Assembly (NCBI GenBank): GCA_002104945.1 | Contig: MCFH01000035.1 | Coordinates: 372,001-436,000, forward strand | DNA length: 64,000 bases | Reading direction: 5' to 3' | Origin: Piromyces finnis finn | Lineage: Eukaryota > Fungi > Neocallimastigomycota | Part shown: piece after piece, positions 21,907-24,900 of the stretch | How the letters are laid out: each line of letters begins with the position of its first letter | Numbering within the stretch: position 1 is the first letter of the stretch | Position numbers and translations under genes: made by a program | Notes under the pieces: generated by a model | Database searches by the model: none | What the model saw: the letters and a program-made list of their open reading frames with translations, nothing else | Told to the model about the DNA's origin: nothing

Positions 21907-24900
21907 ATGGTATTAACGGAAGAAAATAAAAATTATTTAATAAATATTTCGATTCCTGATCAAGATGAATGTCAAGAATTAACAGTATCAGTTCATGATT
22001 TAATTTATGATATAAAAAAAAAAATTGTCATAAGAAATAAAGATTCATCTGAAGTGAATGATTTTACTAATTATGGATTATTATTAGTATCAAAGGAAAA
22101 AACAATAAAACAATTTTTAGAGGATAAAGTTGAAGTTGGAGATCTTGAAAAAATCGCTTCAGTAATAATTAATAAAAAATATAATTTATTTTTCATTTTC
22201 ATTTTCATTTTCTTTCTTTTTTTTTTTTTTTAAAAAAGTAAAAATATAATATTAATGATATATAAAAATAATATATATTTATGTATATACATATATTCCT
22301 ATATTTCAAATTATAATGATCATTAAAATCAATGCTATTATAAATTTAATAAAATAATCAACAACAACGACAACAACAACAACAAAACAATAAAAATTAT
22401 AATTGGATTTTATAAAGGATTTTTATCTTGAATTTGTACCTAAATACAAAATTCTAAAAAAAGAAGATGAAGAAAATAGTTCAAAATTGAATAATGCTGA
22501 TGTTCAGAGAAAATTTATAGATCTTATCAATGAAGACCATGATGATCAAATGATAAAAGATATATTGGAATTGGGAATTGATCCAAACTTTGTTACAGAA
22601 AATGGAGGTTTATAGATCATTATTAAAATAATAATCATTTTATTTTATATTAATTTAAAAGAATATAAAATACAATTATAATATATATTTGTAATTTAAT
22701 TACATTACCTAATTTTAGTTCATAGAATTAAAATAGAATTACTTTATTATATAAATATATATAAATATATTAAAGAAACACCAGTATCATTATGTATTCT
22801 AAGAAATAAAATGAAAATATTAAAAATATTATTGGATAATGGAGCATTTATAGATTATAAAATGCGTAAAGGAAAAAATTGGATAACTTACTTACAATAT
22901 GCAATTTTGTGTCAAAATTTTGATATTATCAAAGTAATTTTTTTTTAAAAGAATAAAAAAAAGAAAGATAAAAAAAGAAGAGAATTAAATATCTTATTAT
23001 ATAACTCAATAATATATTTTTATTAATGTATATTTTATATGTATATATATATATTATTATTTCTTTATTCAAACTTTTCCAAAATAATGAATGAAAATAA
23101 AAATAAAATTATATTAATACGCCATAGTTTTTGATTGAAAGAGGTATATGGATTGAAGATAAAGATAAAAAAAATAGAACAGCTATATATTATGCTATTA
23201 AAGTTAAAAATGTGGATTATGTTAAATATTTACTTAACCTTGGAAGTAATATTCAATGTTTAGATTTTAAAGGCTTTTTACCACTTCATTATGTAATTAA
23301 ATAATATTTCCTAATATTTATTATAATATTAAAATAATATTAATAATAATAATAATAATAATAATAATAATAATAATAATAATAATAATATAATAATAAT
23401 AATAATAATAATAATAATAATAATAATAATAAATAATAATAATAATAATAATAATAATAATAATAATAATAATAATAATAATAATAATAATAATAATAAT
23501 AATAATAATAATAATAATAATAATAATAATAATAATAATAATATAATAATAATAATAATTAATAATAATAATAATAATAATAATAATAATTAATAATAAT
23601 AATAATAATAATAATAATAATAATAATTTCTTTCTTTCTTTATATATAAATAATACACTATGATAATTATGATATTATGATATTATTAACCATCATTATC
23701 ATAATTGTATTTTATAATAATAAAAAATTGCTTATTATAATATTAATAATAATGGACATCATAATAATATATGTTTTAGGCATGTAAAAAAGGAAATGCC
23801 CAAATTGTACACTTTTTAATTGATTATGGATCGAATTTAAATTTTGTAGATGAAAATGGTGACACCCCATTACATATTGCTATGAAACATAATCATAAAG
23901 AATGTGTTCGTTGGCTTCTTATCCGTGGTAGTCGTAAAGATTTACCGAATAATGAAGGATTAAAACCTATTGATATTAATCGTGCTAACCAATGTGACGA
24001 AGAAATAATGAAATTAGTTGAAACTTTTAATTTGAATGATATTAGTAAATATATTAAATATATATACTTTTTATTTATTTAATTGTCATTATTAGAATAG
24101 AGAGTAAACCATTTATAAAAATAAGCTTATAATTATTTATAATAATTATTATTATTTTATAGTAGTACTATTTTTTTTTTTTATATAAAATAAAATATAT
24201 AATTTAAAATCAATCACCATTCATTGTTATATAATAATAATGATAATAATAATAATAATAATAATAAACATAATAATAATAAACATAATAATAATAAATA
24301 TAATAATAAACATAATAATAATAATAATAATAATAATAATAATAATAATAATAATAATAATAATAATAATTAGAATAATAATAATAATAATAATATAATA
24401 ATAATAATAATAATAATAATAATAATAATAATAATAATGGTAATAAATTTATATATATAATCTCTAGTTCCACCGCCACCAAAATTTTCATTATTAGATG
24501 ATAAAAAAGTTATAAAAAAAAGAAAAGACAAACAACCAGAAAAATCAAAAATAGCAAAGAAAAAGAAATCCGTTATAGTTAAAGTTCCACCACCACCACC
24601 TATGTTTTACTCTCCAAAAATTGTATCAGAATTATCGAATGATAGTCTTCCTAATTTACATTGTCGATCAAGTTCAGTATCTTCTCTTTCAAGCGAAAAA
24701 CTATTTAAACCATCGAAACTTGAAAAAACTCAAAGTAATAAAAATATACATTCCAGTTCTCAATTAAATCGACCCTCGACTGAACCCAATAATCGATCAC
24801 CTTTACGTTATAATGAATCTATTTCTAATATCTACGATGATAAAGTTTATGCTCCTACCATTTCTATATCTTCTACCCCATTATCAAAATCTACTGAACT

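Follow-up and report, generated by a model that had tools for sequence, protein, structure and literature searches.

Introduction

Published surveys trace the Shank scaffold to the ancestor that choanoflagellates share with animals (PMC2824662, PMC4137706, PMC9750855), and its N-terminal 126 residues have been described as resembling no other protein (PMC2824662). The solved structures of SHANK3 (PDB 5G4X, 6KYH and 6KYK) contain a small domain, SPN, at residues ~10–93, followed by a short linker and seven ankyrin repeats that end at residue ~345; SH3, PDZ and SAM domains make up the rest of the family's domain complement. Across the aligned N-termini of human, annelid, sea anemone, fly and Monosiga Shank proteins, the conserved motifs are IP[DE], K-C-L-x-F, NYGL, K-F-L-x-E-E, L-E-F-x-x-K and G[LI]DPN, together with an L..AN[LV][KR]KF helix (PMC2824662, Additional file 8), and two phase-conserved introns in this region are common to animals and Monosiga (PMC2824662). 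Here we describe a gene of the anaerobic gut fungus Piromyces finnis whose product starts with a region laid out in a similar way. The gene lies on the + strand at 21907–26306 of the window, by which we mean the whole 64,000-nucleotide stretch of DNA that was analyzed (contig MCFH01000035.1, positions 372,001–436,000), and all coordinates below refer to that window.

Several SHANK3 residues in the aligned region have assigned functions. R12 and K22 are the residues by which SHANK3 holds Ras and Rap, and binding is lost in the R12E/K22D mutant (PMC11393128). R12C and L68P impair Rap1 binding, Q37 and R38 bind actin, and N52 is a key residue of the interface between the SPN domain and the ankyrin repeats (bioRxiv 10.1101/2020.11.12.379222). 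Full-text literature searches on Shank in combination with fungi, chytrids and early holozoans returned no report of a fungal Shank counterpart. In the reading that we favor, to which we give a probability of roughly 0.6, residues 1–345 of the P. finnis protein are homologous to the SPN-ankyrin module of Shank, and the protein is a scaffold whose middle is disordered and rich in motifs and whose C-terminus forms a coiled coil.

Results

The N-terminus aligns with SHANK3 in sequence

We built a profile of 144 positions from the N-termini of five gut fungi, covering the small domain, the linker and ankyrin repeat 1, and checked the underlying alignment by eye. Against the whole PDB, three SHANK3 entries (6kyh, 5g4x and 6kyk) were its top three matches, with E values from 1.8e-5 to 3.7e-5. 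Profile positions 10–141 aligned to SHANK3 residues 10–143 as one collinear stretch, with a mean posterior accuracy of 0.84 and no composition bias. A single orthologous sequence, the open reading frame (ORF) of a metagenome contig (L008), pointed the same way, as the best natural PDB match of its first 140 residues was SHANK3 (query residues 9–140 to SHANK3 10–142, E 0.03).

The positions that the Shank family conserves recur in the fungal proteins as the same or similar residues, with order and spacing kept. Exon 1 (21907..22161) encodes residues 1–85, the bulk of a small N-terminal domain that is putatively SPN or ubiquitin-like, and contains the motifs I-x-I-S-I-P-D, N-Y-G-L-L and K-Q-F-L-E-D. 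Exon 2 (22418..22607; residues 86–148, ending in phase 1) supplies the final strand of this domain (D-F-Y-L-E-F-V-P-K), a short acidic and serine-containing linker, and a capping ankyrin repeat 1 that closes with G-I-D-P-N-F. The fungal protein and Shank thus have in common IPD, N-Y-G-L, K-F-L-acidic, L-E-F..K, the helix of the first repeat and G-[LI]-D-P-N-F. Exon 2 by itself gave a weak single-stretch match to SHANK3 residues 87–144 in the PDB (E 0.24). A three-species exon-2 profile recovered the same residues in one stretch at an E value of 6.2e-5 (26.3 bits), with SHANK3 the only natural protein in its top ten; designed ankyrin proteins matched this profile only in the capping repeat, over 30 residues.

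The predicted structure has SHANK3 as its nearest match

Pfam and structure runs used the public P. finnis protein P0007 (residues 20–858 of our model), single exons and the orthologous L008 ORF. We modeled L008 residues 1–350 with AlphaFold, using no templates and no Shank sequence in the alignment, and obtained per-residue confidence (pLDDT) values of 80–93 for residues 110–343, the ankyrin repeats. When this model was compared with the PDB by Foldseek, four SHANK3 chains came first, with E values of 7e-15 to 2.5e-13 over 359–364 columns at 22–24% identity. The next matches were ankyrin-only proteins at 6e-11 over ~225 columns, four orders of magnitude worse. A shape search of the ESM Atlas placed two SHANK3 clusters in its top rows, spanning residues 5–335 and 14–349, and in VIA-align the longest alignment was to 5g4x, with 250 residues matched between model residues 30–347 and chain positions 32–347 (Z 21.6). 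The collinear arrangement of SPN, linker and ankyrin repeats seen in SHANK3 residues 1–348 was therefore recovered by the profile, by Foldseek and by VIA-align. Together, these results show that, among solved structures, the N-terminus of SHANK3 is the nearest relative to the first ~345 residues of the fungal protein.

The same ranking bears on the main rival explanation, a convergent fusion that arose within gut fungi when a seven-repeat ankyrin array independently acquired an unrelated domain of ubiquitin-like or Ras-association-like type. SHANK3 would then come first as the only solved structure with such a layout, the capping repeats being alike. We consider this unlikely, for four reasons. 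The SHANK3 alignment is a single stretch across profile positions 10–141, with small gaps and equal lengths, and VIA-align likewise spans model residues 30–347 and chain positions 32–347. The matches sit, in order, on the positions that the Shank family itself conserves most. The equivalents of the interface asparagine and of Leu68 are invariant in gut fungi, and the Foldseek E value surpasses that of any ankyrin-only match by the margin given above. Nonetheless, some of the results that follow speak for convergence.

Results that weigh against homology

Several observations count against homology with Shank, beginning with the small domain itself. Pfam FERM_f0 (PF16511), which the first-pass annotation of this locus had put forward as one check, did not match the N-terminus, and all other Pfam models likewise missed residues 1–110, whether exon 1 or L008 residues 1–110 was searched (E<=10). 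At E<=10, profiles of the small domain (up to 84 positions) matched none of the SHANK3, talin or kindlin chains in the PDB, and neither did a 59-position profile of its C-terminal half plus the linker; exon 1 alone had no sequence match in the PDB. Because the small-domain profiles miss SHANK3, the significant signal has its source in strand 5, the linker and ankyrin repeat 1. The exon-2 profile scored 26.3 bits against SHANK3, and extending it by exon 1 brought this to 27.9, a gain of under 2 bits. On sequence grounds, then, the small domain appears to lengthen the alignment without paying for itself, which is more than unrelated sequence would do and yet is not proof. This dependence on repeat 1 is what a convergent fusion would predict, and designed ankyrin caps fit the same 30 residues almost equally well (20.5 bits, in one stretch).

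The later repeats are also less distinctive, a further point in favor of convergence. A profile of exon 3 (22776..22933; residues 149–201, ankyrin repeats 2–3) returned generic ankyrin proteins, with SHANK3 outside the best 60 matches, and the repeats of exon 5 (23780..24044; residues 257–344, repeats 5–7) matched generic ankyrin proteins in the PDB rather than SHANK3. On geometry alone, many ankyrin proteins with seven repeats fit the array equally well (VIA-align Z 20–22). Since the repeats of exons 3 and 5 match generic ankyrin proteins, similarity beyond the generic is limited to the N-terminal ~145 residues; an earlier description of the match as "not just generic ankyrin similarity" holds for that part and fails for the repeats that follow. 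The variant G-A-x-[IV]-D-[FA], which had been taken as Shank-like, also occurs in Ankyrin-B repeats.

The two residues with which SHANK3 grips Ras and Rap are not kept, which also fits convergence. The equivalent of R12 is Asn13 in P. finnis and Asp, Asn or Ser in the other gut fungi; at K22, P. finnis has Gln23 and the remaining four species have Lys. Pfam scans of P0007, of its residues 325–839 (P0007:325-839) and of the L008 ORF, at thresholds from E<=1 to 10, found no SH3, PDZ or SAM domain.

No relatives were found outside gut fungi, in searches weak enough that those with exon 1 and with L008 residues 1–145 missed even P0007, which is in the database; the latter, a word search, had no matches at all. 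A search of exon 1 against a representative library of 1.84 billion proteins revealed no family, only two exon-sized gut-fungus fragments and two spurious repeat proteins; P0007 holds 66 residues identical to that query and yet was not returned. Since these searches overlooked an entry that the database does contain, the finding of relatives in gut fungi alone does not show that the family is absent elsewhere. A word search with residues 1–350 gave P0007 itself and then only generic multi-repeat ankyrin proteins, a result that is uninformative on Shank, and when the exon-1 alignment was used as a protein pattern to scan metagenome contigs, no match was confirmed.

Finally, AlphaFold confidence for residues 1–108 was just 33–54, and a model of exon 1 alone, made from three sequences, reached 53.6. 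Low confidence in two predictions, together with the lack of any Pfam match or PDB sequence match for the domain alone, would suit an alternative in which this is a plain ankyrin protein whose first ~100 residues are not ubiquitin-like but adopt another small fold or are partly disordered, the resemblance to SPN being due to chance. We regard this as very improbable. Both low-confidence models put a strand-strand-helix at the same residues, and the order of elements in the longer model fits a complete beta-grasp (strands 7–14 and 19–26, helix 31–41, strand 53–59, helices 64–69 and 77–83, and strand 84–90, all at low pLDDT). Exon 1 has 54–62% identity to its counterparts in four other gut fungi, and hydrophobic and glycine positions are invariant among them, as would be expected of a folded domain. 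When exon 1 was compared by ESM features, the best named neighbors were PI3K_p85B (0.92, with 183 shared features), Plexin_RBD, Kindlin_2_N, FERM_f0 (0.87) and RA, and all 10 of the best 10 belong to one clan of ubiquitin-like, Ras-binding or F0-type domains.

These neighbors bring in other protein families. The F0 domains of talin and kindlin (FERM_f0 PF16511 and Kindlin_2_N PF18124) are of the same ubiquitin-like N-terminal class, with ESM-feature scores of 0.87–0.88 to exon 1, but HMMER found no match to their Pfam models or PDB chains, and F0 precedes FERM lobes rather than ankyrin repeats. Ankycorbin (RAI14) and UACA resemble the fungal protein in that some seven ankyrin repeats in the N-terminal part are followed by a long region that ends in a coiled coil, but in both the repeats come first, without a ubiquitin-like domain ahead of them. 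Ankycorbin is among the ESM Atlas shape matches for the repeat array, in alignments that start only at model residue ~103. With ankyrin families excluded, ESM features of residues 1–145 gave only chance-level rows, the best named being ANKUB1 (0.80, itself at chance level), which also combines ankyrin repeats with ubiquitin-like domains and for which no sequence or structure search gave support. In ANKUB1, the ubiquitin-like domains lie after the ankyrin repeats, not before them.

On balance, then, the proposal of a Shank-like module in an early-diverging fungus is borne out to the extent that SHANK3 is the top match by profile, by Foldseek and in the Atlas, and is not borne out by the small domain alone, which matches neither SHANK3 nor FERM_f0. 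Homology of residues 1–345 with the SPN-ankyrin module remains our preferred reading.

Interface residues are retained where Ras-gripping residues are not

We paired SHANK3 and fungal residues by the HMMER profile alignment, reading positions in the 5g4x chain as residue numbers. The replacement of the R12 and K22 equivalents makes canonical Ras or Rap binding unlikely in P. finnis, and the Rap1/Ras binding of the Shank SPN domain is not inherited at the residues that confer it in SHANK3. Other functional positions fared differently. N52, at the SPN-ankyrin interface, corresponds to Asn55, which is invariant in the five gut fungi, and the structural pair F67/L68 corresponds to Phe70/Leu71, likewise invariant in gut fungi. 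Retention of Asn55 and Leu71 suggests that the two parts would pack as a closed SPN-ankyrin unit. The actin-binding pair Q37/R38, a basic patch on helix 1, corresponds to Lys38/Lys39, of which Lys39 is invariant in the other gut fungi; the basic character of the patch is retained. Because this patch is Lys38/Lys39 in P. finnis, a cytoskeleton-linked role seems a better guess for the protein than Ras or Rap capture.

A spliced gene conserved among anaerobic gut fungi

The AT content of the gene region is extreme, and a six-frame view shows only short ORFs separated by introns rich in stop codons and microsatellites. The P. finnis gene has seven exons, with a GT donor and an AG acceptor at all junctions, and its 2577 coding nucleotides specify 858 amino acids and a stop. 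Between exons 3 and 5 lies exon 4 (23128..23292; residues 202–256), which encodes ankyrin repeats 3–5, and the array closes in exon 5 at E-T-F-N-L-N-D-I, shortly before that exon's phase-1 end. Exon 6 (24468..25532; residues 345–700) is rich in Ser, Asn, Lys and Pro and is probably disordered, and exon 7 (25828..26306; residues 700–858 and the stop) encodes a conserved C-terminal region. The two introns of the fungal N-terminal region are in phase 0, after codon 85, and in phase 1, within codon 148.

The peptide strings on which the first-pass annotation had relied are all present, and only after splicing, and the 858-residue length that it gave agrees with the seven-exon model. Its description of an N-terminus spliced from five exons was right as to the presence of the strings, but the one ending in NDIIPP takes exons 1–5 plus the opening codons of exon 6. 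The right-hand boundary that it set, 24607, lies within exon 6, well short of the end of the gene at 26306.

Three further lines of evidence establish that this is a real, spliced and conserved gene of P. finnis and related anaerobic gut fungi. First, an existing NCBI entry, "ankyrin, partial [Piromyces finnis]" (P0007, 839 amino acids), is 100% identical to residues 20–858 of the model and has all six junctions in common with it. That entry begins 19 codons late, at codon 20, omitting 21907–21963. The start methionine and the residues that follow are conserved in L003, L001, L007 and the L008 cDNA. The start at codon 20 costs the public protein the first strand of its N-terminal domain, and the label as a partial generic ankyrin is a mislabeling.

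Second, exon-1 fragments from other gut fungi led to the genomic loci L001, L002, L003-L006 and L007. The genomic orthologues retain the same exons (all seven in L003, the first six in L001), which are 53–80% identical at the amino acid level, and their introns differ in length and sequence. Exon 4 is 70–81% identical in L001 and L003, and exon 5 is ~80% identical in the orthologues.

Third, a scan of JGI metagenome records with a degenerate DNA pattern for the exon 1/exon 2 junction found a single contig, L008. Its 2919 nucleotides contain one uninterrupted ORF of 912 amino acids that is collinear with our model, 55% identical to the P. finnis protein and reads across all six junctions. Compared with the genomic locus L001, it aligns in six blocks (87–96% identity), and these begin and end at the predicted splice sites. 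Because the ORF is uninterrupted and the blocks end at the predicted splice sites of L001, we interpret L008 as a spliced transcript of an orthologue.

The genomic neighborhood is conserved as well. Directly upstream, L003-L006 carry a metallopeptidase gene (Pfam PF12044), and its P. finnis counterpart, at 19864–20970 on the + strand, is 89% identical to the L003 copy; gene order is therefore conserved across gut fungi. This conservation bears on a third alternative, horizontal acquisition, in which a Shank-derived module passed from a holozoan, whether an animal host or a protist, to the ancestor of gut fungi. Gut fungi live inside animals, the surveys cited in the Introduction confine Shank to choanoflagellates and animals, and relatives were found only in gut fungi, by searches that are weak for other fungal proteomes. 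Against these points stand the identity to vertebrate SHANK3 of just 22–24%, the six AT-rich introns of fungal style, the conserved synteny with the metallopeptidase gene and the lack of every other Shank domain. These features argue for an old gene rather than a transfer, and we consider horizontal acquisition improbable.

Four smaller observations concern the surrounding sequence and data. Introns 4 and 5 consist mostly of long (TAA)n/(ATA)n microsatellites (23300–23640 and 24230–24440), which produce spurious poly-Asn, poly-Ile and poly-Tyr ORFs. Four sequencing runs of one organism contain 42–52% of the words of the gene region, compared with an exon share of 56%; the closeness of these figures is only a hint that the runs may be transcriptomes. 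The exon-1 orthologue also appears on tiny contigs of two very fragmented assemblies, L007 (NCBI assembly GCA_016295295.1, a contig of 559 nucleotides) and GCA_016648615.1, possibly as gut-fungus DNA inside another organism's assembly. Downstream, on the - strand at 27200–28300, there is what appears to be a further intron-rich gene, with short conserved-looking ORFs at 27805–27942 and 28113–28289.

The protein beyond the ankyrin repeats

In Pfam, only ankyrin-repeat families were found, piecewise in exons 3–5 (Ank_4 in exon 3; Ank_2, Ank_4 and Ank in exon 4; Ank families at E ~1e-13 in exon 5) as well as in P0007 and the L008 ORF. The scores for P0007 (Ank_2, 118 bits; Ank, 97 bits; Ank_4, 98 bits) place it clearly among ankyrin-repeat proteins. 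Neither exon 6 nor exon 7 matched a Pfam family. Because Pfam finds nothing in the last 515 residues, SH3, PDZ and SAM domains are taken to be absent, in agreement with what had been proposed from the first reading of the sequence. With these three domains and the Ras-binding pair all missing, the P. finnis protein is, as judged from its sequence, not a full Shank.

In a three-species alignment, the middle ~355 residues show a 42% identical background with islands of identity. Conserved blocks of exon 6, at residues 445–516 and 642–698, include EPNNRSPLR, NPEDQAT..DTPRTA, DSPRSAIY and FSSASS.LSAFI.ND..LD.ILNIDNE, and two polyproline tracts, PPPPKF (24470–24487) and PPPPPMF (24587–24607), are PPxxF-like. 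The C-terminal 158 residues are 54% identical to L008. A heptad pattern extends over approximately residues 781–840 (26070–26249), where a crude scan of a and d positions was positive for windows starting at 780–797. This segment is putatively a coiled coil, and the pattern fits the C-terminal coiled coil of the first-pass annotation.

Discussion

Our results suggest a model in which the 858-residue protein is a scaffold of cytoplasmic type. Residues 1–345 would comprise a ubiquitin-like (beta-grasp) domain of ~95 residues, a short linker and seven ankyrin repeats, laid out like the SPN-ankyrin supramodule of Shank; this part would probably fold into the same closed unit as in SHANK3 and serve as a protein-docking surface. 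The ~355-residue disordered stretch that follows could use its short motifs and two polyproline tracts to recruit partners of the SH3, WW, profilin or EVH1 type, and the C-terminal coiled coil may dimerize the protein, standing in functionally for the SAM domain of Shank. What the data show is the gene model, the ankyrin repeats and the ranking of SHANK3 as nearest among solved structures; how the small domain folds, whether the unit closes, which partners dock and whether the protein dimerizes are matters of inference. The differences from Shank are also clear. The fungal protein is without SH3, PDZ and SAM domains and has a putative C-terminal coiled coil instead, its small domain is not recognized by Pfam FERM_f0, its overall identity to SHANK3 is low, and it comes from anaerobic gut fungi, outside the clade in which Shank has been reported.

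One possible evolutionary account, which we advance tentatively and hold to be somewhat less probable than its converse, is that the SPN-ankyrin supramodule dates back to the ancestor shared by fungi and animals, and that anaerobic gut fungi have kept it as a scaffold of its own, in which a coiled coil takes the place of SH3-PDZ-SAM. The loss of the Ras-gripping residues, together with the retention of the interface and of basic residues on helix 1, suggests that the original function of this module was not Ras or Rap capture.

If the homology is true, the N-terminal half of Shank predates Holozoa, and gut fungi would offer a simple, synapse-free system for probing the original job of the SPN-ankyrin unit. 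If the ancestral account is also true, the postsynaptic "master scaffold" would have been built in holozoans by the addition of SH3-PDZ-SAM to an older adaptor of the cytoskeleton or of GTPases, whose original job would be open to study in a fungus.

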